Below, piece by piece: positions 27,014 through 63,261 of a stretch of DNA of 64,000 bases. The notes beneath the pieces are model-generated. The model made no database searches, was not told the origin of the DNA, and saw only the letters and a program-made list of their open reading frames with translations. Both the position numbers and the translations under genes were made by a program. The first letter of the stretch is position 1; each line of letters opens with the position of its first letter. This DNA comes from Prasinococcaceae sp. CCMP 1430 (lineage: Eukaryota; Plantae; Prasinodermophyta), in NCBI GenBank assembly GCA_013416795.1, contig RQSC01000011.1, forward strand, positions 302,320 through 366,319, in the 5' to 3' direction.

Positions 27014-29365
27014 TCACTTGGGCGTGCACACGTTCTTCTTGAATGCGCAGAGCTTCTTGGCGTCGCCCTGCTTGCACTCCTTCTTGTTCTTGGCGGCCTT
27101 GCAGAGCTTCTTGATGGCCTTTTTGGAGAGCTCGGACTGGTCGGTCTTCTTCGACTCCTTCTTCTTGTTCTTGTTCTTCTTCTTCTTGCCGGTGGGCTCG
27201 TCGCCCTCCTCGGGAGGAGGCGACGGGGTGCCGGAGAGCTTGTCGGACTTGCCGGCCTTCTTCTTGTTCTTCTTCTTGTCCTTGCCGGTGGGCGACGACG
27301 CGCCTGGCAGAGTGATGTCGAGGGCTGGCGCTGTTGCGTCGTCGAACAGGCCCTCCGCATCTTCGGCGGACTGGGCGGACGTCGAGGACTCGCCGCCCTC
27401 GAACGCGCCCGGCACGTCCGTCTGGCCGTGGTCGTCACGACCCCAGCAGTAGATCGCGCCGTCGTCCCGGGCGACGCCGCACGTGTGAGCCGCTCCGGCG
27501 CTCACGGACGCCCACGCGCCCACGCCGCTCGGCACGTCCAGCTGGCCGTCGGCGTTGTGCCCCCAGCAGTGCATCGAGCCGTCGTCCTGGGCGACGCCGC
27601 ACGTGTGCCAGTCTCCTGCGCTCACTGAGGACCACGCGCCCGCGCCGCTCGGCGCGTCCGCCTCGCCGGCGGCGTTGCTTCCCCAGCAGTGAATCGCGCC
27701 GTCGGCCTGCGCGACGCCGCACGTGTGAAAGTATCCTGCGCTCACCGAGGACCACGCGCCCACCTCGCTCGGCACGTCCGCCTGGCCGTAGGAGCTCCGT
27801 CCCCAGCAGTGCAGCGCGCCGTCGGCCAGCGCGACGCCGCACGTGTGGAAGGTTCCGGCGCTCACGGAGGACCACGCGCTCACAGTGCTGGGCACGTCGC
27901 TCTGGCCGAAGAGGTTCCACCCCCAGCAGCGGAGCGCGCCGTCGGCCCGCGCGACGCCGCACGTGTGGGCCCCTCCGGCGCTCACGGAGGACCACGCGCG
28001 GACGGCGCTCGGCACGTCCGCCTGGCCCGCGTAGTTGGACCCCCAGCACTGGAGCGCGCCGTCGGCCCGCGCGACGCCGCACGTGTGGGAGAGTCCGGCG
28101 CTCACGGAGGACCACGCGTTGTCGCGCCCCGCATCGTGCGGCACGTGCACGTAGCCGTCGCCCGGGGTCGTCGCGTCGAGCGGCAGCCGCACGCGCTCCG
28201 GCGTGCACACGCTCGCGGGCCGCGAGTGCCTTCGCGACGAGTCGTCCACAGCGAGGGGCGGCGGAGATTGGGGGTTGTTGGGCGGCGGGCTCGATGGCGA
28301 GCTCGAAGGAAGGCTCGGCGGAGGCGGGCTCTCTGGCGGAGCATTAGCCGGGACGGGGCTGGGCGACGGGCTCGACGGCGGGCTGGCCGCCGGCGGAGGA
28401 CTCGTCGGGCTCGCCACGTCAGATGTGCTCGGCACGTCCGTCTGGCCATTTGTGTTTCTCCCCCAGCAGTAGATCGCGCCGTCGGCCACGCCGCACGTGT
28501 GGTGGATTCCGGCGCTCACGGTGGACCACGCGCCCACGCCGCTGGGCACGTCCGTCTGGCCATAGTCGTTGGTGCCCCAGCAGAGCAACGTGCCGTTGGC
28601 CTGCAAGATGCCGCATGTGTGCCACCCTCCGGCGCTCACGGTGGACCACGCGCCCGCGCCGCTCGGCACGTCGGTCTGGTTCCAGACGTCCTGTCCCCAG
28701 CAGCGCAGCGCGCCGTCCGCCAGCGCGATGCCGCACGTGTGGTAGTTTCCGGCGCTCACGGAGGACCAAGCGCTCACGTCGCTCGGCACGTCCGACTGGT
28801 TGTAGTAGCTGTTGGATCCCCAGCATTGCAGCGCGGAGTCCGCCTGCGCGATGCCGCACGTGTGGTCGTATCCGAGGCTCGCGGAGGACCACGCAGTCAC
28901 GTCGCTCGGCATGGCGGTCTGGCCCGCGTAGCTCAATCCCCAGCAGTGGAGCGCGCCGTCCGCCCGCGCGATGCCGCACGTGTGAGTCGCTCCGGCGCTC
29001 ACGGAGGACCACGCGCTCACGTTGCTGGGCACGTCCATCTGGCTGTCGACGTCGCGCCCCCAGCAGTGCATAGCGCCGTCGTCCCGCGCGACGCCGCACG
29101 TGTGCGCGTCTCCTGCGCTCACCGAGGACCACGCGCTCACGTTGCTCGGCACGTCCACTAGCGCGCCGAGGTAGTCTTCGTCGTACATCATGGCATTTTC
29201 GGACGGTGCTTCGCCTCCCCAACAGCGCAGCTCGCCGTCGGCGAGCGAGAGGGCGCACGTGGCCCTGTATCCGGCGCTCAGGGAGTACGATTCGCGGTGC
29301 GAGTCGGGAGCGGCGGCCGCACCGCGCGGTGCGAGCAGCGCCACCGCCGCCCATGCCGCGCTCTA
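27014..29365 (-). CDS. Secreted double RCC1/BLIP-II (CRINKLY4-like) beta-propeller protein, copy 1: 7 repeats, Ser/Pro linker, 7 repeats, Lys/Cys tail; ATG not located
   Basis: About 40-aa repeats WSSVSAGxxHTCG.A.ADGAL.CWG....GQ.DVP; signal-peptide-like AAWAAVALLAPRGAAAA; tail KLCKAAKNKKECKQGDAKKLCAFKKNVCTPK*. Confidence 0.85.
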
Positions 29366-29467
29366 TTTCACCGTCAGAGCAATCAGCCAGGTACGCGCGC
29401 GGGGGCGCGTGCAGGGGCGCGCGCGGAGGGCGGGGCCGCCCTTCGCCGCCCTTCTCCGACGGCCGCG

Positions 29468-31703
29468 ATGGGCGCCAAAGAGACCCGCGGCGTCCCGGTC
29501 GAGTACTGCGGCGTGCCCGTGACTTCCTTTCCCGCCCCGGCGCGTGAGTTCCTCGGCGCCTTCGACGCGAATGGCGACGGCGTCATCGACCTGAGCGAGC
29601 TCGAGTCGGCCGCGCGCATGCTCGAACACGCGCGCAAGGGCAGCCTCACGGTTGACATGTTCCCCGAGCGCCTGCAAGACACCGTGCGTGCTCTCGACGA
29701 TGAGGGCGACGGCGTGCTGGAGCTCGACGAGATCACCGAAATGGTCGAGACGTACGCCGCTCTGAAGGAGCAGAACAAGACGGGCGAGATCAACATATCC
29801 ACCCTGCCCAAGGAGATCCAGCCATCGCTGAAGGTGTTTGACGTCGACGGAGATGGAACCGTAGCGCCCATGGAGCTCGCACGCGGCGCCGAGCTGTACA
29901 TCGAGTCCAAGAAGACGGTCAAGAAGCTCACCAGGCTCTCGGTTGCGCTGCTCTTGTTGATGGGCGTCATGCTCGCCGCTATCACGGGCCTCGTCTTCGC
30001 CGTGGTCGAACTGTCCAAAGAGACCAGCACCGGCTCGGGCGGCGTGCAGACCGTGAAGGGCGGGGATGCGCCCGTGGCGACCGCCAAGGTGGAGGAGCGC
30101 GGAAAACTCTTTGATCTGGCAAAGGCCAAGGACAGCACGCTGCTCGCCGTTACCAAGCTCGGCCCCCTCTTTTCGGGGGAGGACAGCCACGCCTTCAGCG
30201 TCACCGGCTACTCGCGCATGGGCGGCGAGGTGCGTTTCTACACCTCGAGCGGCAGCATCGTGTACGTGCGCGAAAACGAGTACCATGTCGCCTCGGCCCA
30301 GGGCGAGACGATCATCCCCGTCACGACCAGGGCCGATGCGAACCAGCGGCGGCGGCTGATGTCGGACACGAGCGAGGAGAGCTTCACCCAGGACGTGGGC
30401 GCGAGCATCGTGGATAACAACAAGCCCACGCCCCCCAAGGAGTGGACCTGCGATCCCGGCTATTACGCCGTGGGCGACGGCTGCGACTGCAACTGCGGCG
30501 CGCCCGACCCGGACTGCCTGACCTGCGAGGACGACGGGACGTACCAGCAAGGTGTGTTTGGCTGCAACAACACTCTGGACCGGTGCGCCGCCGACGCGAC
30601 GTGCACATCGGGGCCGCACCACTGCGCGGATGGCAAGACGATGAGCGAGGAGGAGCACAGCGCGTGGCTGTTAACAGCCACCGACAGCTACAGCGACGAC
30701 TACGCAGACAACCACACCGACTACGACTACGACTACGACTACGACGACTACGGCTGCGGCTACGGCTACCACGAGGACTTTGGCTACGGCTACGGCTGCC
30801 ACAACTACGACTACGACGACCCGACGCGCCGCCACCCTACGACTCCTTCTACCCGCCGTCACCGGATGCGCCCCCACCGTTCTACTCGCCGCCGTCACCG
30901 GATGTGCCCTGGCCGAACGCGCCCCCACCGAACGCGCCGCCACCGGACGCGCCCCCACCGGACTACTCCTATGACTACTCCTACGCGCCCCCACCGGACG
31001 CGCCCCCACCGGACGCGCCCCCACCGGACGCGCCCCCACCGGACGCGCCGCCACCGGACGCGCCTCCACCGAACGCGCCACCACCGTACGCGCCGCCGCC
31101 GAACGGTGACGACTACGAGGACGATCCTCCCATCGAGATCCTCCGGACGTTGCCGGAAGAAGAGCTTGACTACGCGGAGACGGAATTCGCTGTTGACCTT
31201 TTCGACAGAAGTTATGGGTACGATGGGCAGACTGCTATGATGGATATTGGAGAAGTGTATCACCCCCTGTGGCTCGTGTGGCGCTATTTTGCCAAGGTGC
31301 GGCGCGCAGACGACCGCTTAGGCCGGCGCAAGGGGGGGCGACGCGCGCCGACTTCAAGTGGGCGGCCTTTTCGAGAGCCATCGCCAGAGACCGCTTTGAC
31401 ATCCGCAGGCACTCCGACATCGACTTCGCGGCGACGGATGACGACGGCCACCTCTATCGCGAGGAGGGATTCGATGAAATGTTCCCCAAGTCACGGGAAT
31501 GGAGGGAATTCGCGGACCTCTTCTATGGCGCGGATTACGATTACAGTGGTACTCTGCCGTCGCTCGAGTGCAAGCTGGACGACGTGGGCGTCGTGACAGG
31601 TGCTGTGTACGCCGATGCCGAGGTTTCCTTTGTCATGGATGGCGACGAGACGTCAGCATTGCGTTTCCGATCGTTTTCCACAACGATCGAAAGGAACAAC
31701 TGA
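29468..31703 (+). pseudogene. EF-hand / transmembrane / Cys-rich / (DY)n / (APPPD)n surface protein with two frameshifts (~30820, ~31335); pseudogene or indel errors
   Basis: EF loops DANGDGVIDLSEL, DDEGDGVLELDEI and DVDGDGTVAPMEL; one TM helix; RRRL site; GDGCDCNCGAPDPDC; Pro-rich repeats continue in the next frame. Confidence 0.65.
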
Positions 31704-32582
31704 AGCCAAGACTATCGAGCCGGCACCGCTGGCCGCGTTGCTGACCGTCGCTGAGCGCCTCGACAAAACGTAGGCACTCCCCAGTTGAACTTCGCCCACG
31801 AGGACGGCGAGTTGCAAGGTGCGGTCACGCATCTTTGAGGGCGACAAGCTCAACAACCTTCGAGCCACCTGGGGTTCGAGCACGCAAATGTCAGACGCTG
31901 CACGATTGCGACCACAGCAGATAGAGCTATCGACGTCGCATCGCCCACTCCTAGTTTCCTGCGCCCGCCATCCCAATGTGTATGAGACATGGCGTGTGTG
32001 GATCCAGTCGCTCGCCCCGCCTGCTCCGCCCCGCGCGCGCGGGGTGGCGGGCACGCCGCCGGCGCCGTTCCCCGGCAGCCGCGTACCAGGACTGTACTGT
32101 GGTCCAGCTAGACTCTCGAGGCAGCCGGCCGACAGCGCCGGGTCGCCAGGGTTCTCTAGCTAGCTAGAGACTACTCCTACAGTCGTCGTACTGTAGAACG
32201 CAGCGTGACGCCGTGTCTGGCCGCACCAACGGGCGGTGAGACCGGGGATGACATCCTCTGACCGAGGCAGGAAGGCGGGGTCACCCGGGTGAGCGCGAAG
32301 GACAGTACATGTACATACAGTAGTCACTAGTGCAGTACTAGTACTACTGTACTGTAACTGCCCTCGAGCTGTACGAGCGAGCGTGTGTGGGGTGAGGGGG
32401 GTGGGTGGGGGCGGTAGCAGGAGCCACTCGAGGGCGCCCCAGCAGGCGCCCACCGCCGCGCCGCCTTGACCCCTCCCTGTTTCCCACGCGCGTGCCCCCT
32501 GTGGTGGTGTGTGTTGGGGGGGGGGGGGAGTGCGGCGCGGCGTGGGCGCGCGCTTTGCCGCCGCGGCGTCCCGAAGGCGACG

Positions 32583-34719: not shown

Positions 34720-34894
34720 CGCGCGGCACGGACAGGGCGTCGCGCACCACCGCGAGGGACGCCACCCCAAGCCACCCTCCGCCACCCTCAGCCCCGTTGC
34801 GCGCGAGCCAGCTCCAGCCTGCTCCAGCCATGCCTTGCCGAGCTTCACATCCCGGTCGGGAAGCACCTTGTAATAATTTTTAATGTATACAAAA

Positions 34895-35022
34895 CCCACG
34901 GGAGATCATTCTGGGCCCTAGACTAGACTAGTACTAATATTTGTGCATTATATACCCACGGGAGACTCATTTCCGTGCGCGTGCCCTTAAAAGCCCGATA
35001 CGTTTCAAGACCCCACGGGAGA
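34895..35022. repeat. Three direct copies of CCCACGGGAGA in an AT-rich spacer
   Basis: Copies start at 34895, 34955 and 35012. Confidence 0.85.
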
Positions 35023-35215
35023 GTTACTGTACATTCACGCGAGCCTTTCGTTTTGACCTCGCGTCGCCGGCCGCGTTCCCCCGGGCGCGGCCGCGGCGAA
35101 AAGCGCGCCGGCGGCGCGCCACGCGTGCGCGCCCCGCCGCAGGCGCGTACCCGCGGACGCGCGCGCGCAAGGGAGCGAGAAAAGCGGCGTCGGGTACAGG
35201 CGGGAGGCTGTGCAC

Positions 35216-36241
35216 ATGGAGCTTCTGCAGCTGGACTTCGCGCGCGCCAAGGCTGCGCGCGGGCTCACAGCGAGCGAGGCGCGGTCGGTGCTGCGGCTGC
35301 TCGTGCGCACCGACGACGAGCAGGCTGCCGGGGAGCGCCTCCCCGCGGCCGACGCGTATGGCAGTGAGGCAGGCGCGGGCTACGAGCAGGAGGCGCCCTC
35401 TTCGGCGCTGCGCGCGCTGATGGCACTCGCCGCGGAGGCTGCACGCACACTGGCGGCGGAAGGCGAGCTCTGTTTCGACGACGAAGGCCCCGCACTTGCC
35501 GCCGAGCGTGCCCAGCGTGCCAGGAACGCGCTCGCGCTCGCGCTGCGCGCCAACGAGCAGATGGAACAGGCCGCCCGCGATGCTAAACGCCGCGCGGCGC
35601 GTGCGCGCGCCGAATCCCAGGCTCTGCGCACGGCGCTGGTGCGCGCCGAGCGCGCGTGCGCCTCAGCCGAATCGCTGCCGCTCGCGCGGCTGCCAGCCAT
35701 GGGTGCGGCGGCCACGCGCATACAGGCGGCCTACAGGGGAGTGAAGGGGAGGCGGAGCGCGCGCGCTTTGGCCATGGCCATCCTGCGCGGCGAGGACTTG
35801 GCGGACGGCCTCGAGCGCTCAGAGCAGCGCTCTCGCGAGGTGGCGACAGCTGCCTACTCGAAGGATTTGCAGGTCCCACAAACCGCGAGCTACCGCCAGC
35901 CCCCTCTGAGCGTCGTGTCGGCTGCGCGCAGGCGCGCCCGTGAGCTGGAGGCGGAATGCGAGCGTCAAGGTGCCAGGGCGCAGGCGCTCGAAGCGCAGCT
36001 CGAGAGCGCTCGCGCGATCGGAGGCGATGGCGCGTCGCAAACGCTGGCGCCGGGGGCGCTCGACGGCGAGGGGAACGTGGAAAAGGCGGACGCTGGCGAA
36101 AGTGCGGTACTGCTGCGCGCGCGCGTCACACAGCTTGAGCGTGCGTTGATAGCAACGGGGACGACACTGCCGCCGACGCCCGTCGAGGCCGACGGGCGCG
36201 TGCATGCGCGCGGCACGACCGTAGAGCTTATTGAAAGCTAA
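35216..36241 (+). CDS. IQ-motif coiled-coil protein
   Basis: AATRIQAAYRGVKGRR IQ motif flanked by predicted coiled coils. Confidence 0.7.
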   Translation: MELLQLDFARAKAARGLTASEARSVLRLLVRTDDEQAAGERLPAADAYGSEAGAGYEQEAPSSALRALMALAAEAARTLAAEGELCFDDEGPALAAERAQRARNALALALRANEQMEQAARDAKRRAARARAESQALRTALVRAERACASAESLPLARLPAMGAAATRIQAAYRGVKGRRSARALAMAILRGEDLADGLERSEQRSREVATAAYSKDLQVPQTASYRQPPLSVVSAARRRARELEAECERQGARAQALEAQLESARAIGGDGASQTLAPGALDGEGNVEKADAGESAVLLRARVTQLERALIATGTTLPPTPVEADGRVHARGTTVELIES

Positions 36242-38081: not shown

Positions 38082-39149
38082 GGCACCGACCGCCGTCGCC
38101 CACGCCCTTCCTCACAGCCCCCCTCCCTTTGCCTCCCTGCCCTTGTCCCCCACGCGGTGCGCTGGCGCCGCCGCCGCCGCTCGCCGCCGCCGCGGCGGCC
38201 GCCACACCAGGCCCGCCTCTCACCCCCCCACCCACTCTCCCACCGCCGCACGCAGCTGCTCGCGCGCAGCAACGCCCTTGGCCACTTCGCTCAGGGCTGG
38301 CAAGCGCCCCGGCGGCGGGCGCCCCGCGAAACGCGCGCGAATTCGGCCGAAAGCAAAAGAGCTGGAAAACCAAAACCAAAACCAAAACCACAACCACAGC
38401 CCCGGTTGGGACCTCCCGGATGTGTTGGGGCTGACTGCATTGTACCAGGTACACACTAATATTCTATTCCTAACCACAACCAAAAACCAACCAAAACCAA
38501 AACTGGGAGTCCCGACCGACCGTTGGTGGCGGTGCCACCCCGACCTCGACCTCGGCACGCGTGCGCATCGTTGGCGGAGGTGCGGAGCGGAGCCCGGACC
38601 GAATGGAGCGTCGACGCGCGCGCGTGCCCCGCCCCCAATCCGACTGAGGGGCCTCGATCGGATCAAACCTCCCATCAACACGGCGGCGCCCGTCCGCCTC
38701 CAGCCCGGGCCGAACCGCAACGGATCCAACGAAACTCGCGGAATGAAACTTCATAAGTGTGCGAATCCATGCGGAACCCACACGCGGGGACTCTACCGAC
38801 CGCGCGCCCGCCTTTTTTTTTTTTTTGAAATGGGGGAGGGGAGGAAAGAATGCAGGCGACGAGAGGCCATGATCTCAGCCCTTTGTAAAAGGATCTAAAT
38901 CAAAAATTTGAATTTTTCGCGCGCGTGGCTGAGAGCGGGGTGCATGGGCGGGCGAGGCGCGGCGGGAGGGGACGCCACACCTCGCGCTCGGGGCGGGCGG
39001 ACGGGAGGGGGGGGGGGACCAGGTGGGTTGAGGAGGGCGAGGAGGAGGGGAGGAGAGAGCTGGTCGGAGGGCTGCGCGCCGGTGCGCGCCGCTGCGCGCC
39101 GCTGCGCGCCGCTGCGCCGGGATGGCGCTACGGCGCGGGCGATGACGCC

Positions 39150-42100
39150 ATGGACGTGGACGCCGACGCCGGCGCCGAAAGCGACGCGGGCGCCAGCCTC
39201 GCCTCGCCCGAGTCCCTGGCGCGCGCGCTGCGCGCCATCACCACGCGCCACGGCAAGCTGCTCTCGACGCGCAGCGAGGCCGTGCGCGCGGCGGCCGCGC
39301 TTTGCGGCGACGTGCTCGCGTGCGAGCGGTCGCCGGCGCAGGCCGTGGAAGACGCATGCGAGGCGCTGCGTGCGCTCTGTGTTGGCGGTGGCTTCGTCAC
39401 CGTGGCGCTCGCCGCGTGCGTGCTCAAGGAGCTGCTGCCATGCCTGCTCTACGGCGCTCCGCCCGCGGCCGCGAGCGTCAACCGCTCGCAGCCCACCATG
39501 AGCCGCGCCCAGAAGGCGTGCCGCGCCGCGGCGCTCGAGGTGGCGTTGTGTGTTGCCGACTCGACCACCAGCGCGGCGGCGGCGGCGCTCTCTCGCCAGC
39601 TCTGCCTTCGCGCCCCCGAGCGCGCCGACCTGCACAACCTGGCCATCGAGGCCGCGCGCGACCTCGTGCACACGCTGCCGCTCGCGGAGCGCCATCGCAT
39701 GGGCCGCTTCCTCGCCAAGCTCAGCAAGAACGGCAAGCCCGTGCGCCGCCAAGTCGCGGTCGAGCTCGCTGGCGAGCTGCTCGCCACCATGCCTGGTGCG
39801 CAGGACGAGATCCCGGCGGGCATGGAAATGGAGATCGTAACCCCCGGCTCCGTCGCCGGCACGCCGGGCTCAGTGTACGGCGGCACCCCCTCGGGCACGC
39901 CCGGTGGCGGTGGCGCGCGCTCGCCCTTCCCGGTCACACCCGGCGCTGCTGTTGGCACGCCGTACGCTTCCACACCAGCCAGTGCGACCGCCGGCACGCC
40001 GCAGCCGACCCCAGGCGCGTTTGGCCAGAGCGCCCCCCTCTCGTGGGGTGCGTCCTGCGCTGGCGTGGTGGTGGCGCGCGCGAGCGACCGCATGCCCGCC
40101 GTGCGTGCCAAGGCTTTGGCAGCGCTGGCGGTCGCACTGCGCGCACTCACCGCCGAGGGCTTCCACGGCCTCGTGGCGCGCGCAGCGAGCGCGTCGCCCG
40201 GAAGCACGCTCCTTACCACCGGTGCGCACACCGATGCACTTCTGGGCTTTACGGCCCCCACAGATGCTGGCACGAAGGCCACCGCGTCGACGCCGGTTGG
40301 ACCGACGCCCATGGACGACACCGCGGGCAGGGAGGGCATCAACGCCGCTGCGCGTGCGTCCGCACGCGCAATGGCGCCCCTGCTCTACCGCCGCGTGACG
40401 GACGTCAAGCCTGCGGTGCGCAAGGCAGCGCTAGCCGCGCTCGAGTCCCTCTGCACGTCCGCTGGCCACGCCACCCGCGAGGATATTGCAGCACTGTCCG
40501 CGTGCTGCTCCGACAGCCTCGTGAGCGTGCGACGGCAGGCTGCGGCGTCTCTCGGTGCGATGTGCGCGTGCCTGCCGAATGACCCCGCGCTTGCCCGTGC
40601 GGTCGCAGAGACGGTGCTTCCCCTCGCCGCGGACCCGGAGGCGCAGGTCGCAGACAAGGCCGCGGACGTCTGCGAGCAGGTCTTCCTCGCGCCCCTCGTG
40701 ACCGGCGACGCATCAGCCGCCGAGGAGGTCGCGAGCACGCTGGGTGCGCTTGCAGATGCGCCGAGCGCGATGGCGGCCTTGCCCCGCGCTCTTGGCGCGC
40801 TGCACGCCCGCAAGGCGGTGAAACCCGCGCATGTACGCGCGCTGCAGGCCTGCTGCGCCAAGGGCACGCGCACGAGCGCGCGCGCGGGAGCGCTGGCACT
40901 CCTCGCGCAGCTCGCGGACTGCGCGCCGGGCGCAGTGTCGGCGGAATTCATCACCGCGCAGTGGAAGAGTCTGGACGCGTCCTCTTCCGTCGAGGAGGAC
41001 TCCTCCATGGCCGACGTGCTTCGCATCATTGCCAAATGTGGCGCCTCTGCGCTGAGTGCCGATGCGGGCGGACAGATGACTGCGACGCTGGCGGGTCGCC
41101 TGGCCGCGTGCGCCGCGTCGCCCGCGACCGTATCGGCGATGATGGGCGCTGCCATCGCCTTGGGCGGCACGCGCGTCCTGCCGCCACTCATGGAGTCTGC
41201 TGCCAAGCGCGTTGTGCGCGCGGTGACTGCCGGCGATCTCGGCACCGGCTTCGAGTCAGGCGTGCAGGACAGCGCGCAGAGCGCGACTCTCGTTGCTGCG
41301 CTGTTCATGCTCGGCGAGTCAGCGCTCATCTTGGAGCGCGAAGCGCCCGCCGAGGCCGTCACTATGACTCAGGCGCTGCTGGGCGCGTACCTTGAACGCT
41401 CCGGCGACGCCAGCAGCGTGCGCGTGCCCTCTGTTGTGCGCGCGCACGCGTGGTGTGCCCTGGGCAAGATGTGCGTCGCGTACGAGCCGCTCGCCAAGAA
41501 GTGTGCGGTGCTTTTCGTCGCCGAAGCCGAGTCCGGGGCCGAGGCCGCAAGCCGCAACAACGCGCTCGTGGCGCTGTCCGACCTCTGCGTGCGCTACACT
41601 GCGGTCGTCGACGGGCGCATGGAGAGGCTGGCGTCATGCCTGCGCGATCCCTGTGAGCTGGTGCGCCGCCAGGCGATGCTCCTGCTCGCGTCGCTGCTGC
41701 AGCGCGACTACCTGAAGTGGCGCGGCGCGGTCTTCCACCGCTTCTGCCTGGCTCTTGTGGACGAGAGCCCTGCCATCCGCGACCTCGCCACGCACCTACT
41801 GGGGAGCACACTTGCAGCTAAGGTGCCCATGCTCGCGCACAATCACTTCGTGGAGGCCTTCTTTGTGCTCAACGCGTGCACGATCGGTCCTGGCGCGGGC
41901 GCTGCCGTTCCTGAGGGCGCCAAGGCCCGCTCCCTGTTCTGCCTCGAGGGGACGCACATGCGCTCTCGCCGTCTGGCCGTCTACCGCCGCCTGCTTGCCA
42001 CCATGACGCCCGAGCAGCGCTTCGCCTCTACTGCCCGCCTCTGCAGCGAAGTGCTCGGCTGCGTCGCGGACGGCGGCCTGCCGGTGAACGAGTGCGAAGA

Positions 42101-43067
42101 AGTCATCGCAGACGTCCTCAGCGTGCTTGCCAGCAAAGAGGCGCAGACTGGCGGCGCGCTGTCGACGAGCGCCGGCGCATCGGAGCCTGAGAATGCCATG
42201 GAGGCCGTTGCGGCCGCCAAGGGCCGTGTGGTGTCGCAGCTCATGCGCAAGAATACGCTCGAGAATGTGGTGCCCGTGCTTGTCGAGCTGCGTGCGCTGC
42301 TGCAGCGGCTGCGCTCGCCGCTGCAGGGGCACATGCTGGGCTGCGCGTGCGACGTCCTGCGCCCGCACCGCAACGAGCTGCGCGACGCGCTGGCGGCGGA
42401 CCCGCTCTTTGCCGCGGAGGTGGCCGACGAGATGCGACGCAGAGATGCGACGCGCGCCGCTGGCATGCAGGCGCAGCAGCAGCAGCCGAGCGCGCAGAGC
42501 GCACAGCAGCCCGCGCCGCAGCAGCCTGCCGAGCAGGCTGCGGCCGCGCCTGCGAATCGGACTCCCGCGACGGCCAAGACCGTGCGCATCGCCACCGAGG
42601 CGACGCCGAACGCCGATGCAAATGCCTCGCCCATGTACGCTGCCACGGGGACCCCAGGCGCGGGCCTCTCGGGCGGCACCGCCACGCTGCGGGCGCTCGC
42701 ATCGGCCGGCACCCCGCGACACTCGGAGATGTCGGTGCCGCGGTTGCGCACAACGCGCGCGCGTACGCGCGCAGGCGCCGCTGCCGCGCTTGCGAGCGGC
42801 TCGCCGTCACCCGGTGGCGCGCGACGCGTGTCAGGCGTGGCCTTCGACGGTAGCGAGGGCGCGCAAGCGCGCGCAGCGGCGACCGTGTGCGCCATCCGCA
42901 CGCCGGGCTCGGCTGCCGCTGGTCAGGAGCCCCGCGAGCGTTGGAATGTCACACTGGCCGCGCCAACCACAGACGCGAACGCCGACGCCGAGGACCTCGC
43001 TGCAGATGCAGACGCTGCTGCTGCTGAGGAGCCCAAGGCTGGCATGAAGCGCGCGCGTGGCGAGTGA
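39150..43067 (+). CDS. NCAPD3: Condensin II HEAT subunit CAP-D3
   Basis: HEAT repeats; RAHAW.ALGKMC, RNNALVALSDLCVRYTAVVD and LRDPCELVRRQ..LLL..LLQRDYLKWRG (Cnd1 region). Confidence 0.88.
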   Translation: MDVDADAGAESDAGASLASPESLARALRAITTRHGKLLSTRSEAVRAAAALCGDVLACERSPAQAVEDACEALRALCVGGGFVTVALAACVLKELLPCLLYGAPPAAASVNRSQPTMSRAQKACRAAALEVALCVADSTTSAAAAALSRQLCLRAPERADLHNLAIEAARDLVHTLPLAERHRMGRFLAKLSKNGKPVRRQVAVELAGELLATMPGAQDEIPAGMEMEIVTPGSVAGTPGSVYGGTPSGTPGGGGARSPFPVTPGAAVGTPYASTPASATAGTPQPTPGAFGQSAPLSWGASCAGVVVARASDRMPAVRAKALAALAVALRALTAEGFHGLVARAASASPGSTLLTTGAHTDALLGFTAPTDAGTKATASTPVGPTPMDDTAGREGINAAARASARAMAPLLYRRVTDVKPAVRKAALAALESLCTSAGHATREDIAALSACCSDSLVSVRRQAAASLGAMCACLPNDPALARAVAETVLPLAADPEAQVADKAADVCEQVFLAPLVTGDASAAEEVASTLGALADAPSAMAALPRALGALHARKAVKPAHVRALQACCAKGTRTSARAGALALLAQLADCAPGAVSAEFITAQWKSLDASSSVEEDSSMADVLRIIAKCGASALSADAGGQMTATLAGRLAACAASPATVSAMMGAAIALGGTRVLPPLMESAAKRVVRAVTAGDLGTGFESGVQDSAQSATLVAALFMLGESALILEREAPAEAVTMTQALLGAYLERSGDASSVRVPSVVRAHAWCALGKMCVAYEPLAKKCAVLFVAEAESGAEAASRNNALVALSDLCVRYTAVVDGRMERLASCLRDPCELVRRQAMLLLASLLQRDYLKWRGAVFHRFCLALVDESPAIRDLATHLLGSTLAAKVPMLAHNHFVEAFFVLNACTIGPGAGAAVPEGAKARSLFCLEGTHMRSRRLAVYRRLLATMTPEQRFASTARLCSEVLGCVADGGLPVNECEEVIADVLSVLASKEAQTGGALSTSAGASEPENAMEAVAAAKGRVVSQLMRKNTLENVVPVLVELRALLQRLRSPLQGHMLGCACDVLRPHRNELRDALAADPLFAAEVADEMRRRDATRAAGMQAQQQQPSAQSAQQPAPQQPAEQAAAAPANRTPATAKTVRIATEATPNADANASPMYAATGTPGAGLSGGTATLRALASAGTPRHSEMSVPRLRTTRARTRAGAAAALASGSPSPGGARRVSGVAFDGSEGAQARAAATVCAIRTPGSAAAGQEPRERWNVTLAAPTTDANADAEDLAADADAAAAEEPKAGMKRARGE

Positions 43068-51806: not shown

Positions 51807-52312
51807 GCCTCACACGCCCCCGCAGGTGACTGCGCGCCGTCTGGCACACCCCGCCGCACCCAGCCCCCGCACCCGCGCACGCGCCCGGAAGCCCGCGGCG
51901 GCAGGCGGCGGCGGCGCCGCAAATCCGCACCAAATCCGAACGATTGCATCCCGCACACACACGCACGAGCAATCAACATACTTCGACCTCGCGACGAATG
52001 TTTCTGAGCGTCTCCCCAACAGATCTTTCCTCTGCCTCGCTCTCTCTTGCGGAGATCGGTGCCTCCAGGGTGCTGACCCTTCCCGCAAGTATCTTCTTTC
52101 GACGGGTGCCGTTTCGGGCAAGAGTTGAAGCAGTCGTCTCCATTCACTTTGACGTGACATTGAGTGTTTCTGAGCGTACCACGTGTCGCTTGTGTTATTG
52201 ATCGTGTGCGTGTGTGGTGTCGGTGCGGCGAAAACCCCGATCCGATCTGACGGTGCGCCACAGCGCGCGCGAGCGCGTGCTGTGTTCCGCCCGTCGCAGC
52301 CGGGGGGGCGCG

Positions 52313-53888
<1,576 letters not shown>

Positions 53889-54150
53889 TGATGCGACGCG
53901 ACGCGGCGCCGCGATGGATGCGGCACGATGCGGCGCGACGTGACGTGCCACGCCGTGGCGCGGCGACGCGACAGGATGTGACGCTTCATGCTCGCGCCCC
54001 TCGCTCGACCGACCTGTAATTGTAATCGATATCGTACATGGAACAGCCGCCGGGCGTCGCGTGCGCGCGCGAGAGCACATCGAGTGCCCCTCGGAGCGAG
54101 TGCCCTCGGAGCGAGGCGCCCTCACGCCCTCGGAGCGGCAGCTCGATGCC

Positions 54151-54921
54151 TCAGAGCTCGCCGCGGCGCGCCTCGCCCGCCGGCGCTCTCGCGGCGGAGG
54201 TGCGCCTCCACTCGACGAACGCTTCCCAGCCCTCCGCGTGCTCCTCCCTCTCCCAGTCGGCGGCTTGCGCACCCGCCTCGACGAGCAGGCGCAGCGCCTC
54301 CCAGTTGCGCGTGCGCAGGGCGAGGTGCACCGGGGTCCAGCCCTTGCTGGAGTCCCTGTCCGCCAGGTTTACGTCCACGCCCGCCTCGATCATAATCGCG
54401 AGCGTCTCGACGTGTCCCCTCGTGCCCTTCCACAGCGCGCGGTGGAGCGGCGCGTACCCGTCCGGGTGGAACGACTGCCAGTCGAGCCCCCCCTCGATGG
54501 CAGCCCTCATGGCGGCAGGCCTGCCCTGGAAGGCCGCGCCGTGCGCGCACGTATACCCGTCCCGCTCGCCGGCCAGCGGGTCCGCGCCCGCGTCGAGGAG
54601 CGCCCCGAGCATGTCTGCGTGGCCGTACAGGCAGCTCGCCATCAGCGCGGTCTGGCCATCGCTCGGATCCCGGTAGTCAAGGTCGTCCTCGGGGCGGCGC
54701 TCATCGAGCAGCGCGAGGAGCTCCTCCGTCGCGCCCGCCCTGACGGCTCGGAGGATCCTCGGGCCCAGGGGGGGTGGTTTGCGCCTTGTGGTGCCCGAGG
54801 CCGCAAGACTGCCAGCGGGCAGGTCGGTGGCGAGGACGAGCAGCGCTCCCAGGAGCGCCGCTCGGGTGAGCGGGGCTGCCGCGCGGCCGCTGGGGAGCCG
54901 GGCCGGCGGCGCGCGCGTCAT
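54151..54921 (-). CDS. Ankyrin-repeat protein with signal peptide and C-terminal RGEL
   Basis: GQTALM..C..GH, GYTCAHGAA, GYAPLHRA and GWTPVHLA repeats; hydrophobic N-terminus. Confidence 0.8.
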   Translation of the reverse strand: MTRAPPARLPSGRAAAPLTRAALLGALLVLATDLPAGSLAASGTTRRKPPPLGPRILRAVRAGATEELLALLDERRPEDDLDYRDPSDGQTALMASCLYGHADMLGALLDAGADPLAGERDGYTCAHGAAFQGRPAAMRAAIEGGLDWQSFHPDGYAPLHRALWKGTRGHVETLAIMIEAGVDVNLADRDSSKGWTPVHLALRTRNWEALRLLVEAGAQAADWEREEHAEGWEAFVEWRRTSAARAPAGEARRGEL

Positions 54922-55184
54922 CCCCGGGCGGCCCTGCAATGCAGATGGGCGCGGTCCGGGGTTGGACAGGCACCGGAGGCGCCGGCGGAAGCTGCCTAGC
55001 GTCGCTGAAGTCGGCTGGTGCGCGCGCTGTGGGGGGCGGCAGGTGCTGCCCGGACTGGTGGCACCTGGGAGGCGCGGCGCGTGGCTGCGGGCGGCAGTTG
55101 GATGTCGTGTCGCGTCGAGTTGTGATGACTGGGAAGAGAAGAAGATTGACTGAATTCGTGTCAAAATGCGTGAGGGCAGCACAT

Positions 55185-55370
55185 GAGGCGCGTGCGTCGA
55201 TCGCCTCTCGGCGTCTTCCCTCGCTTTCACTTGGGCGCGCACGCGTTCTTCTTGAACGTGCAGAGCGTCTTGGCGTCGCCCTGCTTGCACTCCTTCTTGT
55301 TCTTGGCGGCCTTGCACAGCTTCCTGACGGCCTTTTTGGAGAGCTCGGACTCGTCGGTCTTCTTCGACTT
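55185..55370 (-). repeat. Orphan copy of the Lys/Cys tail module (KSKKTDESELSKKAVRKLC...CAPK*) with diverged 3' flank
   Basis: Near-identical to 27014-27155, 56001-56145 and 63524-63666. Confidence 0.85.
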
Positions 55371-56000
55371 AGGCCGAGCGTTGCGTTCGCGGCACGAGGG
55401 CGCGCTCCGGCCGCGCGCGCGCGAGCGAGGATCTCGGAACGTTCCCTTCCTTCCTTCTTTCCTTCCCTGGCTCGTCGCACCTCGCGCGATCCGCTCCGCC
55501 CGGACCGCGCGCGGGGAGGGGCCGGACCGCGCGCGCGGAGAGTGAACTGGTTGCGAACCACCGACCGAAGGGGGGAATCGCAGAAACGGGCGAGCGCGTC
55601 CAGGCCACCGCGCGGAAACCGCGGACCCTGGAAACGACCCACCGACGGGGGACTCGGCGCAGACGTATGGCCCCCGTCTGGCTGGCTGGACCGCGAAGCC
55701 CGGTCACAGTGGCGTCGTCAAGTTAAGGTCTGGACGATGAGAGGGTTTACGTACTGTATGCGACGGCGCGACGGCGACGGCCAATGCACAGCCTGCGCTT
55801 CGGCAGCGCGGAGCGGCGACTCGCTCTGCGCCCTTGGGCGCCTCTCCTCGCGCGCATCCTCGCGGTTTTACGAGGCAGGCGCGGGAGACTATGACTATAG
55901 CAGAGTGGAGGCGATTCGAGTGTGATGAGTTGTCAGCGCCAGTGCGCGCTCGAGCGAGGCGTGGGTGTCGACCGCCTTTCGGCGGCGTCTCCCCCCACGT

Positions 56001-58562
56001 TCACCTGGGCCTGCACGCGTTGTTCTTGAATGTGCAGAGCTTCTTGGCGTCGCCCTGCTTGCACTCCTTCTTGTTCCTGGCGGCCTTGCACAGCTTCTTG
56101 ATGGCCTTTGTGGAGAGCTCGGACTCGTCGGTCTTCTTCGACTTCTCCTTCTTCTTGTTCTTCTTCTTCTTGCCGGTGGGCTCCTCGTCCTCTTCGGGAG
56201 GAGGCGACGGCGAGCCGGAGGGCTTGGACTTGCCGGCCAAGAAGAACAAGAAGAAGAACGAGAAAAAGAACAGGAACGGCCCGGGCGACGACGCGCCTGG
56301 CAGAGTGATGTCGAGGGCCGGCGCTGTTGCGTCGTCGAACAGGCCATCCGCATCTTCGGCGGACTGGGCGGACGTCGAGGACTCGCTGCCCTCGAACCGC
56401 GGGCCGTGCAGGCAGACCGGCACCAGCAGTGCTGGGGTCGTCTAGATCGCGCCGTCCTCCCGGGCGACGCCGCACGTGTGAGCCGCTCCGGCGCTCACGG
56501 AGGACCACGCACCCGCGCCGCTCGGCACGTCCGTCTGGCCGTCGGCGTCGCGCCCCCAACAGCGCATCGCGCCGTCGTCCCGGCTGACGCCGCACGTGTG
56601 CCAGTCCCCTGCGCTCACCGAGGACCACGCGCCCGCGCCGCTCGGCGCGTCCGCCTGGCCGTCGTCGTTGGACCCCCAGCAGTGAATCGCGCCGTCGGCC
56701 TGCGCGACGCCGCACGTGTGAAAGTATCCTGCGCTCACCGAGGACCACGCGCCCACGCCGCTCGGCACCTCCGTCTTGCCAAAGCCGCTGCGTCCCCAGC
56801 AGTGCAGCGCGCCGTCGGCCAGCGCGACGCCGCAGGTGTGGAAGGTTCCGGCGCTCACGGAGGACCAAGAGGACCACGCGCTCACAGTGCTGGGCACGTC
56901 GCTCTGGCCGAAGAGATTCCACCCCCAGCAGCGGAGCGCGCCGTCGGCCCGCGCGACGCCGCACGTGTGGGCCCCTCCGGCGCTCACGGAGGACCACGCG
57001 CGGACGGCGCTCGGCACGTCCGCCTGGCCCGCGTAGTTGGACCCCCAGCACTGGAGCGCGCCGTCGGCCCGCGCGACGCCGCACGTGTGGGAGAGTCCGG
57101 CGCTCACGGAGGACCAGGTGTTGTCGCGCCCCGCATCGTGCGGCACGTGAACGTAGCCGTCGTGGCCCCAGCAGAGGCCCCAGCAGCGCAGCTCGCCGTC
57201 GGCGTGCGCGAGGCCGCACGTGTGCGAGCGCCCGGCGCTCACGGAGTGCGGTGTGGCATCCACAACGAGGGGCGGCGGAGAGTTCGGGTTGTTGGGCGGC
57301 GGGTTTTGAAGAGGCGGGCTCGACGGAGGCGGGCTCGACGGAGGCGGGCTCGACGGCGGCGGGCTCGACGGAGGCGGGCTCGACGGCGGCGGGCTCGACG
57401 GCGGGCTGGCCGCCGGCGGAGGACTCGTCGGCGGGCTCGGCGGCAGCCAGCTCGGCACGTCCGTCTGGCCGTATTCGCCGTCGCCCCAGCAGTAAATCGC
57501 GCCGTCGTCCCGGGAGACGCCGCACGTGAAGTACGACCCGACGCTCACGGAGGACCACGCGCTCACGTTGCTCGGCACGTCCGTCTGGCCGTTGCCATTG
57601 AGTCCCCAGCAGAGCAGCGCGCCGTCGGCCTGCGCGATGCCGCACGTGTGCCATTCCCTGGTGCTTACCGAGGACCACGCACTCACAACGACCGGCACGT
57701 CCGTCTGGCCCTCGCCGTTAGATCCCCAGCAGTGCAGCGCGCCGTCGTCCAGCGCGATGCCGCACGTGTGGTACATTCCGGCGCTCACGGACGACCACGC
57801 GCTCACGTCACTCGGCACGTCCGCCTGGCCGTAGTCGTCGTAGTCAGAGGGGGATCCCCAGCAGCGCATCGCGCCGTCAGCCTGCGCGATGCCGCAGGTG
57901 TGGTACATTCCGGTGCTCACGGACGACCACGCGCCCACGCCGCTCGGCACGTCCGTCTGCCCGTCGGTGTTCGATCCCAAGCAGTGCAGCGCGCCGTCGG
58001 CCTGCGCGATGCCGCACGAGTGGAACAGAGATGGGCTCACGGAGGACCACGCGCCCACGCCGCTCGGCACGACCCCTTCGCCGTACATGTTATACCTCCA
58101 GCAGTACAGCGCAGAGTCCGCCCGCGCGATGCCGCACGTGGCGTAGGCGCCGGCGCTGACGGAGGACCACGCGCTCACATTGCTCGGCATCGGAATGTGC
58201 TCGTACTCGGAGACGTAGTAGTAGGTGGAGTCGGACGGTTCAATTTCTGGCCAGCAGCGCAACTCCCCGTCGGCGTGCGCGAGGCCACACGCGTGGAACG
58301 ATCCGACGCTCACGGAGTACGGCGGCTCTGAGTCCGAGTCCGAGGCGGCGGTTAGCTCTGAGTCCGAGTCCGAGGCGGCGGTTAGCTCTGAGCCCGAGTC
58401 CGAGGCGGCGGTTAGCTCTGAGTCCGAGTCCGAGGCGGCGGTTAGCTCTGAGTCCGAGTCCGAGGCGGCGGCGGCGCCGTTGAGGCCCGGTGCGAGCGCC
58501 GCCGCGCATGTCGCGAGGAGCAGCAGCTTGTTGGTTGTTGCGAGGGGGGGTGGAGGGGGCAT
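56001..58562 (-). CDS. Secreted double RCC1-like propeller protein, copy 2; continuous ORF once the complemented segments are corrected
   Basis: Signal peptide MPPPPPLATTNKLLLLATCAAALAPG, (ASDSDSELTA)n, 7+7 repeats, (SSPPP)n linker and Lys/Cys tail. The TAG at 56442 is created by a complemented segment. Confidence 0.85.
58327..58470. repeat. 30-nt coding minisatellite, about 5 copies (ASDSDSELTA)
   Basis: GTTAGCTCTGAGTCCGAGTCCGAGGCGGCG in tandem. Confidence 0.95.
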
Positions 58563-58965
58563 GTTTTTGTTTCGCAGGACGCGACGAGGCCCTGGTCGGT
58601 TGGGCGGAGGATGAGGCGTGAGAGGGGGGGGAGGGCGGAGTGGGAAGGCGGTCAGGGGCAGCTCGACCGTGCAAGCTCTACGAGCGGCAGCGCTGCCTGA
58701 AACCGAGCAGGCCGTAGGCGGCCTTGTACGATATGAATGCGGACACACACTAGCAAAAGCCAGCAAAAACATGTACACGAAAACTGATGTCACACTTGCC
58801 TCGAGCACATAGCCAGACCATGCGCGGCCGGCGCACCGCCCGCGACCCGCCTGCTGTAGGCGGCGAGGCGGGGGGAGGGACTCGCTGGCTCATCGCGAGC
58901 GCCACACGCGCTCTCGGTCGCGCCCTCGCGGCCGGGACGCGCGCGCGCACAGGGGCGGGGGGGCG

Positions 58966-59241
58966 ATGGCGCCAGCGGGGGGCGCTGCAACCCCCGCCGC
59001 GACCCCGAAAGCGATCGCGATCGCGACCACGCCAGCGCCCGCGACGACGCCCGCCCCCGGCCTGGTGGACGCTCGTGCGGCGCAGCCGGGGGCTCCTCGG
59101 CTCGCGATTGGGGCCGCCGTCGTGGAGCTCAAGCTGTGGCTACACCGCTTCGTCAACGTGGACCTCTTCGAGCAAGGATGGTACGCCTTCCGCATCTCGG
59201 CGAGCGCGGATGCAGCGAATCACGCCACCGGTGGCAGCGGC
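58966..59241 (+). CDS. 5' fragment of a FAM135-like protein, cut at the single-N join
   Basis: VVELKLWLHRFVNVDLFEQGWYAFRIS resembles the FAM135 N-terminal motif. Confidence 0.7.
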
Positions 59242-59242
59242 N

Positions 59243-61768
59243 GGCGGGCTCGGAGGCGGGCTCGAGGGGGTCAGATCAAAGACGTACGCGCTGCCGCTAT
59301 CGTCGCCGCCGTCGTTGTCCTCCCTATCAGCGCCCACCAGCGCGTAGTAGCCCGAGAGCGCCACGCTGACGCCGAAGTAGTCATCCGCCGCGGCGTCGCT
59401 TGCCACCAGCTTGGCGTGCTGCGACCACGACGTCCCCGACCGCAGGAAGACGTACGCGCTGCCGCTGTCGTCGCCGCCGACGGCGTCGTAAGGAACGCCC
59501 ACCAGCGCGTAGTCGCCCGAGAGTGCCACGCTTGTGCCGAAGTTGTCATACTCCGCGCCGTCGCTGGCCAACAGCTTGGCCTGCTGCGACCACGAGGTCC
59601 CCGACCGCACGAAGACGTACGCGCTGCCGCTGGCGGAGCCGTCAAAAGGGGCGCCAACCAGCGCGTAGTCGCTAGAGAGCGCCACGCTGGTGCCGAACTC
59701 GTCATTCGCCGCGCCATCGCTGGCCACCAGCTTGGCCTGCTGCAACCACGACGTCCCATTGCGAACGAACACGTACGCGCTGCCGCTGTTGGAGCCACTG
59801 TCGTCGTCGTGGGGAGCGCCCACCAGCGCGTAGTCGCCCGAGAGCGCCACGCTGACGCCAAAGCGGTCGTCGTACGTGCCGTCGTCGGCCATAAGCTTGG
59901 CCTGCTGCGACCACGACGTCCCCGAACGCACGAACACGTACGCGCTGACAGGGTTGCCGTCGTTCCACCAAGCGCCAACCAGCGCGTAGTCGCCCGAGAG
60001 CGCCACGCTGGCGCCGAAGTTGTCAGATCGGCGCCGCAGCGACCGTTGGTCGAACCGGACGACGCTGGTGCTGCAGGGGCTGGGCACGAACACGTACGCG
60101 CTGCCGCTCTCGTCGCCGCCGTCGTCGTCATATAGAGCGCCCACCAGCGCGTGGTCGCCCGAGAGCGCCACGCTCCAGCCGAAGGCGTCACCCGCCGCGG
60201 CGTCGCTGGCCACCAGCTTGGCCTGCTGGGACCACGACGTCCCATTGCGCACGAACACGTACGCGCTGCCGCTGTAGGGGCCGCCGTCCTCGTCTGAATA
60301 AGCGCCCACCAGCGCGTAGTCGCCCGAGAGCGCCACGCTGGTGCCAAAGTAGTCAGCGTCCGTGGCGTCGTTGGCCACCAGCTTGAACTGGTTCGGCGGT
60401 CCTGAGCTTCCTCCTGAGCCTCCTCCTTCCCAACCTCCGCCCGAGCCTCCGCCCCTCGGAGGCGGGGTCGGCGGAGGCGGGCTCAGCGGCGGGCTCGGAG
60501 GCGGGCTCGGCGGCGGGCTCGGCGGCGGGCTCGGAGGAGGGCTCGAGGGATTAAGATCAAAGACGTACGCGCTGCCGCTGAAGGAGCCGCCGTCGTCGTC
60601 CCATTCAGCGCCCACCAGCGCGTAGTCGCCCGAGAGCGCCACGCTGACGCCGAAGCGGTCATATTCTGCGCCGTCGCTGGCCACCAGCTTGGCCTGCTGC
60701 GACCACGACGTCCCCGACCGCACGAACACGTACGCGCTGCCAGTCCTTGCGACGCTGACGTTGTTCTCAAGAGCGCCCACCAGCGCATAGTCGCCCGAGA
60801 GCGCCACGCTGTGGCCGAAGAAGTCAGCCTCCGCGGCGTCGCCGGCCACCAGCTTGGCCTGCTGCGACCACGACGTCCCCGACCGCACGAACACGTACGC
60901 GCTGCCGCTGTTCACGCCGCCGTCGTCATCGTACACAGCACCCACCAGCGCGTAGTCGCCCGAGAGCGCCACGCTTTCGCCGAACAAGTCACCCGCCGCG
61001 CCGTCGCTGGCCACCAGCTTGGCCTGCTGCGACTACGACGTCCCCGAACGCACGAACACGTACGCGCTGCCGCTGTCAGGGCCGTCCCCGCGAGCGCCGA
61101 TCAGCGCGTAGTCGCCCGAGAGCGCCATGCTGATGCCGAACAAGTCACCCTCCGCGCCGTCGCTTGCCACAAGCTTGGCCTGCTGCGACCACGACGTTCC
61201 GGTGCGCACGAAAACGTAGGCGCTGCCGCTGTTCTCGCCGCCGTCATCGTCCCCAAGAGCGCCCACCAGCGCGTAGTCGCCCGAGAGCACCACGCTGTCG
61301 CCAAAGTAGTCATCCTCCGCGCCGTCGCTGGCCACCAGCTTGGCCTGCTGCGACCACGTCGTCCCCGAGCGCACGAAGACGTACGCGCTGCCGCTCTGGA
61401 AGCCGCCGTCGGCGTCTCCAAAAGCGCCCACCAGCGCGTAGTCGCCCGAGAGCGCCACGCTGGCGCCGAACTGGTCCAACGCCGTGCCGTCGCTGGGCAT
61501 CAGCTTGGCCTGCTGCGACCACGACGTCCCCGACCGCACGAACACGTACGCGCTGCCGCTCATGTCGCCGTTGTCGTCATCAAATAACGCGCCCACCAGC
61601 GCGTAGTCGCCCGAGAGCGCCACGCTGCTGCCGAACTCGTCATCCCCCGCGCCGTCGCTGGCCAGCAGCTTGAACTCCTCCTCCAAGTCCGCATGCGTCA
61701 TACGCACCGCCATGGTCTGGCGCCAGCAGCGCAACCCATGCGCTAAGCAAGCGACGAGGGGTCGGCAT
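59243..61768 (-). pseudogene. Secreted double FG-GAP seven-bladed propeller protein with SPPP linker; frameshift after the signal peptide, in-frame TAG at 61033-61035, 3' end lost at the N join
   Basis: 14 repeats of KL.ASD....D.FG.SVALSGDYALVGA......GSAYVF.RSGTSWSQQA, each block ending VFDL; signal MPTPRRLLSAWVALLAP. Confidence 0.8.
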
Positions 61769-61784
61769 TTTGTTGTTGTTGTTG

Positions 61785-61786
<2 letters not shown>

Positions 61787-61849
<63 letters not shown>
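61787..61849. repeat. (GT)n microsatellite running into a gap
   Basis: Read directly from the sequence. Confidence 0.97.
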
Positions 61850-62380
61850 NNNNNNNNNNNNNNNNNNNNNNNNNNNNNNNNNNNNNNNNNNNNNNNNNNN
61901 NNNNNNNNNNNNNNNNNNNNNNNNNNNNNNNNNGCCGCGCGAGGGCGGTGTCGCGGCAGGCGGACGGCTGCGACCGTCGCGGCTGCGGCACGCGCGTGCG
62001 CGCTGTGGCCGCGCGCCCGAATTCGAACTGCGTGTGCCCGCCGATGTGAAGGGCCTCCCCCTTCCTTCCGCTCGGCGGTTGGTTGGTACTGTCCAGAAGG
62101 GTGGTTGGGCGTTTTGAGTGCTTGTGTTGGTGTGCTGTTTCAAATTGTTTGTTTGTGTTTCTGTCCGTTTGTTTGGCGCGAGCGACGTTCTTCGTTGGCG
62201 CTTGTTGTTGTTGGAACTGAGGGGGCTCGAGCGCTTTGGCAGAATGCATTCGTTTTGACCTGGGCTGGAGGGCGAGGGGCCGACTGCAATTCGCACGCAA
62301 AAATGCATGAGGACAGCGGACGGCGTCGAGCGCCGTTCGTGCCGCATCCACGAGGGCCGTGGTGCCGATGCTGGGGGCCG

Positions 62381-62725
62381 TCATACGCGCTGGGCAGGAG
62401 TAGAGGGAGTCGTATCGACGGTGTGCTCGCTCTCCCTCGGCCTCCTGCTGCGCAGCCCCAGGAAGAGGAGGGCGGCAACCATGGCAGCGGCGGCGACGCT
62501 GGCGGCGGCGATGCTGCCAGCGCTGTGAGGCGCGGAAGTCCTCGGAAGCGGGCTCTCGGGAGGAGGAGGCGGTGGGCTCGGAGGAGGATGAGGAGGATGA
62601 GGCGGGCTCGGAGGAGGCGGGCTCGGAGAAGGCGGGCTCGGGGGAGACGGTGGAGGCGGTACAGGGGGCGGGCTCGGAGGAGACAGGCTCCAAGGAGGTG
62701 ACGGAGGTGGAGGGCTAGGAGGTCG
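62381..62725 (-). pseudogene. C-terminal fragment of a type-I membrane protein: extensin-like SPn stalk, TM helix, short tail
   Basis: PPSPPPPSPP...AGSIAAASVAAAAMVAALLFLGLRSRR; no convincing upstream coding part. Confidence 0.55.
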
Positions 62726-63106
62726 ACGGGCGCAAAAGAGGTGCGTAAAAACGCAGCCCGTGGACGTACACCCGCCGGGGTCGCGTCCGCGCGCCACTGC
62801 GCGCGCCGCTCGTGCAGAACACCGCTGACAAAAACGCAGCACGTGCCCTGCAGGCACCGCGTGCCGACACGCCACTCAATGTCAGTGCAAACATATGTCA
62901 AAATCTATCAAATGGGACAAAAACGTCACACAGTCATAACTCCGCGCTCAGGCGTGCATTTCAACATCTGAACAGTGCTACGGACTCGTAAAGATCAGCC
63001 GCAGCCGCTGCGCACTCAACCAAGCCGCACAAACGCCTCCAAGGCGCTCGTAATGGAACCGCCGAGACGGCACGAAAAGCCTGAAAAACCCTACCCTGAA
63101 TTCAGG

Positions 63107-63261
63107 TAGGGTTTAGTGTTTAGGGTTTAGGGTCTAGGGTTTAGGGTTTAGCCAAATCCCAAATCCCAAATCCCAAATCCCAAATCCCAAATCCCAAATC
63201 CCAATAAGGGTTTAGGGTTTAGGGTTTAGGGTTTAGGGTTTAGGGTTTAGGGTTTAGGGTT
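63107..63261 (+). repeat. Internal plant-type telomeric (TTTAGGG)n array, with 63152-63204 reading (AAATCCC)n
   Basis: Read directly from the sequence. Confidence 0.95.

Follow-up and report, generated by a model that had tools for sequence, protein, structure and literature searches.

Six short segments of a Prasinodermophyta draft assembly are unreversed complements of the expected sequence and very probably stem from a software strand-handling error

The green alga Prasinococcaceae sp. CCMP 1430 (Prasinodermophyta) is represented in GenBank by the assembly GCA_013416795.1. Within a 64,000-nucleotide (nt) stretch of its contig RQSC01000011.1 (positions 302,320 to 366,319 of the forward strand; hereafter the window, numbered from its first letter), six segments of 43–70 nt are the letter-by-letter complement, unreversed, of what paralogs, repeat units or telomere phase require. 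Segments 1–3 lie in RCC1-repeat genes, segments 4 and 5 in an FG-GAP repeat gene and segment 6 in a telomere-type array. These segments very probably arose from a strand-handling error of the software that produced the draft assembly, and are not sequence carried by the organism; taken as biology, they are almost certainly not a feature of the alga. The complement relation, the restoration of reading frames and the presence of the corrected letters in independent assemblies are direct observations, and they are laid out first.

For detection, the whole window was complemented without reversal and compared with the window itself by BLASTN, with the two other symmetric letter swaps serving as controls. 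The complemented window gave 100 same-direction matches, which fell on six places, as against 4 for the control swap A↔C/G↔T and 2 for A↔G/C↔T, all of the control matches lying in a (TG)n microsatellite or in low-complexity sequence. Outside the (TG)n run and low-complexity tracts, the complement swap is the sole letter swap present in the window. The complement matches of segments 1–4 have E-values from 1e-15 to 1e-29 (Table 1). In ungapped three-part alignments the flanks are direct and collinear and within the block every letter is complementary, with both junctions in perfect register and the length unchanged. Once the six blocks are complemented back, exact paralog matches cross the junctions: one of 175 nt runs over both ends of segment 3 and one of 62 nt over the right-hand junction of segment 4. 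Segment 2 is bridged at one end by a match of 34 nt and at the other by one of 57 nt; its left edge is ambiguous by 1 nt in BLASTN (56238/9; 63677/8). As given, the segments match nothing else in the window in ordinary direct or reverse-complement orientation, barring 15–23-nt AAG-type low-complexity matches of segment 2.

The BLASTN of the complemented window, the collinear direct flanks and the near-empty control swaps together confirm what a first-pass annotation, made from the sequence alone, had claimed, i.e., that six segments here are exact unreversed complements. All six of its sites stand, while its boundaries were off by 1–4 nt (segment 1 begins at 28162, not 28161, and segment 4 at 60029, not about 60025). 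The scan that it had proposed, for segments whose complement matches a paralog with matching flanks, was run within the window and recovered the same six places.

Table 1. Coordinates of the six complemented segments, the genes that hold them and two assembly gaps in the window.
Feature	Position	Strand	Length	Location or character	Evidence
Segment 1	28162–28231		70 nt	RCC1-repeat gene copy A	Complement 100% identical to 57176–57245, E 2e-29
Segment 2	56239–56281		43 nt	Lys-rich C-terminal tail, RCC1 copy B	Complement 100% identical to 63678–63720
Segment 3	56398–56442		45 nt	Last RCC1 repeat, copy B	Complement 100% identical to 27405–27449 and 63837–63881
Segment 4	60029–60083		55 nt	One FG-GAP unit	Complement 90–96% identical to ten sister units, direct flanks
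Segment 5	60400–60454		55 nt	Proline-rich (SPPP)n linker	Complement 78% identical to neighbouring linker repeat
Segment 6	63152–63204		53 nt	(AAATCCC)n inside (TTTAGGG)n array 63112–63266	
RCC1-repeat gene copy A	27014–29344	minus		Holds segment 1	
RCC1-repeat gene copy B	56001–58808	minus			Pfam RCC1_2, E 2e-70; frame analysis
FG-GAP repeat gene	59243–61713	minus		ATG at 61713–61711; holds segments 4 and 5	Pfam FG-GAP_2, E 7e-183; frame analysis
Single N	59242			Join	Contigs of 4.8–14 kb from four of four runs match up to 59241 only
84-N gap	61850–61933			Behind (GTT)n(TG)n microsatellite; intergenic, touches none of the six segments	

The consequences for the encoded proteins are plain in the five segments that lie in coding sequence, where the as-given letters read as peptides unlike their surroundings. 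Both RCC1-repeat copies are recognised by Pfam RCC1_2 (E 1e-70 to 1e-78). In copy A, correcting segment 1 turns a nonsense peptide into a full RCC1 repeat, HTCG...CWGRDGY, and the corrected segment has the very same limits as a 70-nt exact repeat block that is common to two loci. In copy B, correcting segment 2 replaces a false peptide rich in F and L by the K-rich tail. At the right junction of segment 3 a false TAG arises (56442–56444, minus strand), which splits copy B into two open reading frames (ORFs), 56442–58808 and 56001–56441; correction removes this stop and restores the AIYCWGRDDHGQTDVP of the RCC1 family. The earlier claim that the segments create a false stop and false peptide segments therefore holds, as the TAG and five false peptides vanish on complementing. 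The reading frame on either side of each segment is unaffected because the length is kept, and hence ordinary checks miss errors of this kind. A homologue search around segment 1 returned a closest relative of at most 58% identity.

Two further observations concern the RCC1-repeat family. Compared with copy A, copy B carries at 57165–57190 a tandem duplication that keeps the frame (CWGLCWG), directly beside the counterpart of segment 1. Members of the family also have in common a conserved C-terminal tail rich in Lys and Cys (KKLCKAARNKKECKQGDAKKLCTFKNNAC), found at 26991–27290, 55209–55370, 55978–56300 and 63500–63720. Three gene copies carry this tail, as do a stray fragment at 55.2–55.4 kb and a metagenome relative from ENA (the protein P0114, described below), and it matched no Pfam family.

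In the FG-GAP repeat gene, correction of segment 4 restores the RSGTSWSQQAKLVASD motif of the unit in which it lies. By DNA, segment 5 is the weakest of the six (78%, low complexity), and its support comes from the reading frame and from contig joints at 60399. As given it encodes a G-rich false peptide; corrected with its 55-nt boundaries it reads as an unbroken SPPP-type linker into PPNQFKL. A representative search with the FG-GAP ORF returned a very large family in which no representative of the same species was recognisable. One in-frame TAG is left in this gene after correction, at 61033–61035 (SGTS*SQQ), where all sister units have Trp; this difference of a single base may reflect either an error in sequencing or a genuine nonsense allele.

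Segment 6 interrupts a telomere-type array. Overlapping AAATCCC dimers were observed six times in the segment where zero were expected, and AAATCCC is no rotation of CCCTAAA, the reverse complement of the telomere unit. Complementing the segment restores the telomere phase on the left, while the right side has one extra A and one TTTAAGGG unit. The array itself, which lies within the scaffold in the region 63086–63270, is a (TTTAGGG)n tract of about 155 nt whose G-strand points to the right; a small inverted repeat AAACCCTACC / GGTAGGGTTT comes before it and another RCC1 gene copy after it. The array may be an interstitial telomeric tract, or else the end of a chromosome to which another contig was joined without Ns.

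Independent data were drawn from Logan contigs, which a different program had reassembled from raw reads. Those of four public runs, from four studies, were compared with 56150–60550, an interval that covers segments 2–5; the comparison concerns the best-supported matches, and contigs rather than raw reads. Twenty public runs contain 71–76% of the sampled words of 52000–61800. The contigs depart from the as-given sequence exactly at 56282, 56397 and 56443, and their loose ends consist of the complementary letters. The departure at 56443 is seen in contigs X1, X4 and X6 and that at 56397 in X18, with the boundaries at segments 2 and 3 found across the four runs together. Behind 56226, a contig's loose end keeps the native C at 56238 and then switches to the letters complementary to those given. 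At 60399, the left boundary of segment 5, contigs of three runs part from the as-given sequence, and in the bin that holds segment 4 (59972–60118) the summed contig depth is 3- to 10-fold below that of the neighbouring bins in all four runs.

A metagenome provides a second source. When the C-terminal piece of copy B, as given, was searched against 5.8 billion proteins, the sole match was P0114 on the ENA metagenome contig L002, and this protein reads the corrected version of segments 2 and 3. At the DNA level, L002 is 96.5% identical to the corrected 56238–56576 with no gap, as against 86.5% to the as-given sequence with a break at 56282. Taking contigs and metagenome together, independent assemblies carry the corrected letters at segments 2 and 3, and at segment 5 they bear on the left boundary only. 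The as-given letters had no support among the best-supported contigs of the four runs or in L002, which does not prove their absence from the raw reads. No protein containing the false peptides was found among the 5.8 billion in a search limited to 80–255 amino acids. In metagenome contigs of the Joint Genome Institute (JGI), segment 3 written in weak/strong (W/S) code with exact flanks gave 0 matches, which is uninformative since the species is apparently absent there; a scan of the same contigs for related loci with P0114 returned only distant RCC1 relatives at 35–42% and is equally uninformative.

Which step and which program were at fault, and the significance of 55 nt as a program parameter, we infer from the form of the segments. 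Short pieces of about k-mer size may have needed turning to the other strand while a path or a gap fill was written into the scaffold, and may have been reversed without complementing, or complemented without reversing. Either slip, viewed on the final strand, would give the true sequence with A↔T and C↔G swapped and with register and length kept. Repeats would be favoured sites, as graph assemblers hold short shared nodes there and gaps get filled there. Since both junctions are in perfect register, the process must have known the exact length of each piece, and this fits the writing of graph nodes or fills, or an alignment-anchored replacement, and not blind extension by read overhangs. Segment 1, an exact 70-nt repeat, looks like what is expected of a collapsed repeat node, and the two segments of exactly 55 nt suggest a k-mer-sized unit. 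If the software used two-bit base coding, as assumed here, exchanging A↔T and C↔G amounts to a bitwise NOT, which neither of the other swaps does. To our knowledge, no polymerase or repair pathway writes a parallel complement.

Strand-handling slips, whether a complement without reversal or the converse, are familiar as a source of parallel complements or mirror images of preserved length. Such errors usually affect whole records, whereas here they take the form of k-mer-sized pieces inside otherwise correct scaffolds, which would place the error within an assembler, a scaffolder or a gap closer. The first-pass annotation had suspected an orientation bug in an assembler or gap filler; the restored motifs and frames, the contig letters at the boundaries, the contig L002, the complement-only swap and the other faults of the draft, to which we return below, all support that suspicion.

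Several points weigh against a software origin or against its details. The evidence from independent data consists of contigs, and of the best-supported ones, so the absence of the as-given letters from the raw reads is not demonstrated. Paralogs whose flanks are nearly identical could be the source of the contigs that show corrected letters. Among the best-supported contigs, the loose ends at segment 4 derive from a paralog and lack the exact corrected letters, and segments 1 and 6 lie outside the contig comparison. Only segments 4 and 5 measure 55 nt, and the remaining lengths of 70, 43, 45 and 53 nt do not fit one fixed parameter of 55.

The fault may also have lain in an alignment-based step, a possibility to which we give at most about the same weight as to the writing of paths or gap pieces, and under which the segments would still be an artefact. 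Here a polisher or gap closer would have complemented reverse-strand reads that were already in reference orientation, and the consensus would become the in-place complement wherever only such reads were used. The perfect register at both junctions is as expected if an alignment fixes the positions; the segment lengths vary from 43 to 70 nt, and every segment sits in GC-rich repeats, where read support is thin. On the other hand, the recurring exact 55 nt resembles the size of a k-mer or node, segment 1 is identical with an exact repeat node, and no information on the pipeline was found in the literature.

The remaining explanations fare far worse than a strand-handling error in either form. 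A decoding error in colour space (the SOLiD two-base code), in which two colour errors bracket a wrongly decoded stretch, is highly improbable. Colour strings are unchanged under complement, and an in-register complement with intact flanks is therefore possible; however, the complement is one of three wrong decodings, the other two would be expected about as often, and none of them occurs outside the (TG)n run and low-complexity tracts.

We regard it as extremely unlikely that the segments are real DNA made by a process not yet described, either by copying of a template in parallel orientation over 40–70 nt or by a systematic A↔T/C↔G exchange, with a preference for GC-rich repeats. The rule A↔T + C↔G with its abrupt switches does match the swinger DNA that H. 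Seligmann has claimed from GenBank, and which, to date, is reported under no other rule (PMC4942731). In both cases a template match appears only after the exchange, and the switch is abrupt and contiguous with regular sequence. The swinger claims, however, invoke polymerase behaviour, whereas here the letters are ordinary in independent contigs and in a metagenome contig, and the context is indicative of software. The present case, if anything, suggests a mundane source of swinger-type database records rather than support for polymerase exchange.

Other features of the segments argue in the same direction. Three of them show zero divergence from the complement of a paralog, which would need many very recent events, all five coding cases wreck conserved motifs, and the recurrent 55-nt size points to software; nor do we know of any enzyme that does such a thing. 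While the unproved absence of the as-given letters from raw reads leaves this explanation some room, the new mutational process that the first-pass annotation had raised as an alternative finds no support, with the contigs of four runs and L002 showing the unexchanged letters.

Two known types of DNA change or structure invite comparison. Inversions and template-switch mutations also replace short segments in place within repeats and leave the flanks intact, but they yield reverse complements, while the relation here is unreversed; the lack of any reverse-complement match within the window, beyond the short low-complexity ones of segment 2, excludes both. Parallel-stranded DNA duplexes, made in vitro from designed oligonucleotides, do have strands related by an unreversed complement. 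We know of no replication of such a duplex, and nothing in the window suggests one.

Chance resemblance in low-complexity DNA could at most concern segment 5, in a simple GGN/CCN repeat at only 78%, and segment 6, a 7-nt repeat, and it is scarcely credible given the E-values of segments 1–4, the unbroken linker restored in segment 5 with 55-nt boundaries, the contigs that leave at 60399, and, in segment 6, the six AAATCCC dimers against zero expected and a phase kept exactly across the left junction.

Prasinoderma is an evolutionarily important green alga, sister to other green plants, and a public draft of it seems to carry a systematic error whose consequences are false stops, truncated gene models, false peptides in repeat proteins and corrupted telomere arrays. 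The value of the finding is thus that of a data-quality warning on the assembly. Its users, including those who train language models on it or who search for swinger sequences, should prefer a long-read assembly or mask such blocks. The procedure used here, i.e., in-place complementing followed by self-BLAST with the two other letter swaps as controls, is a simple detector of errors of this kind.

The strand-handling error is not the only fault of the draft, and its other faults count in favour of a software origin of the segments. The window has a G+C content of 69.8% and seven N runs, three of them single Ns. The published genome of Prasinoderma coloniale has the same G+C figure and was assembled from PacBio data with NextDenovo and NextPolish, with scaffolds nowhere mentioned (PMC7455551). 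The gapped, scaffold-level draft of the window seems to be a different assembly from the published PacBio-based one, and no description of its assembly pipeline was found in the literature.

The single-N join at 59242 is no true adjacency. Past 59241, the independent contigs continue for at least 4–8 kb with further sequence that is unlike 56150–60550. A plus-strand ORF that begins at ATG 58966 is cut by this N; a Pfam scan gave no family for it, and a resemblance to a DUF3657-type N-terminus is unsupported. The 84-N gap lies 137 nt upstream of the FG-GAP gene's ATG (minus strand), with the nearest segment over 1.2 kb away, and no reading frame must cross it. It falls outside the compared interval, and its 70-nt dinucleotide run is uncrossable for 31-mer contigs.

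A further fault concerns the condensin-2 D3 ORF at 38925–43067. After its first approximately 105 residues, its product is essentially identical over about 1,300 residues to the EukProt protein PRCOL_00006258 of Prasinoderma coloniale, and its DNA is 99.4% identical to the Tara Oceans contig L001. The genome is accordingly that of Prasinoderma coloniale or of a very close relative. Upstream of 39131, over 38807–39130, the window is unlike both L001 and the N-terminus of PRCOL_00006258, which agree mutually. The 5' 324 nt of L001 are absent from the window in any of the orientations tried (complement, reversal and reverse complement). The break at 39130/39131 is probably a misjoin or a deletion that the draft does not mark with an N.

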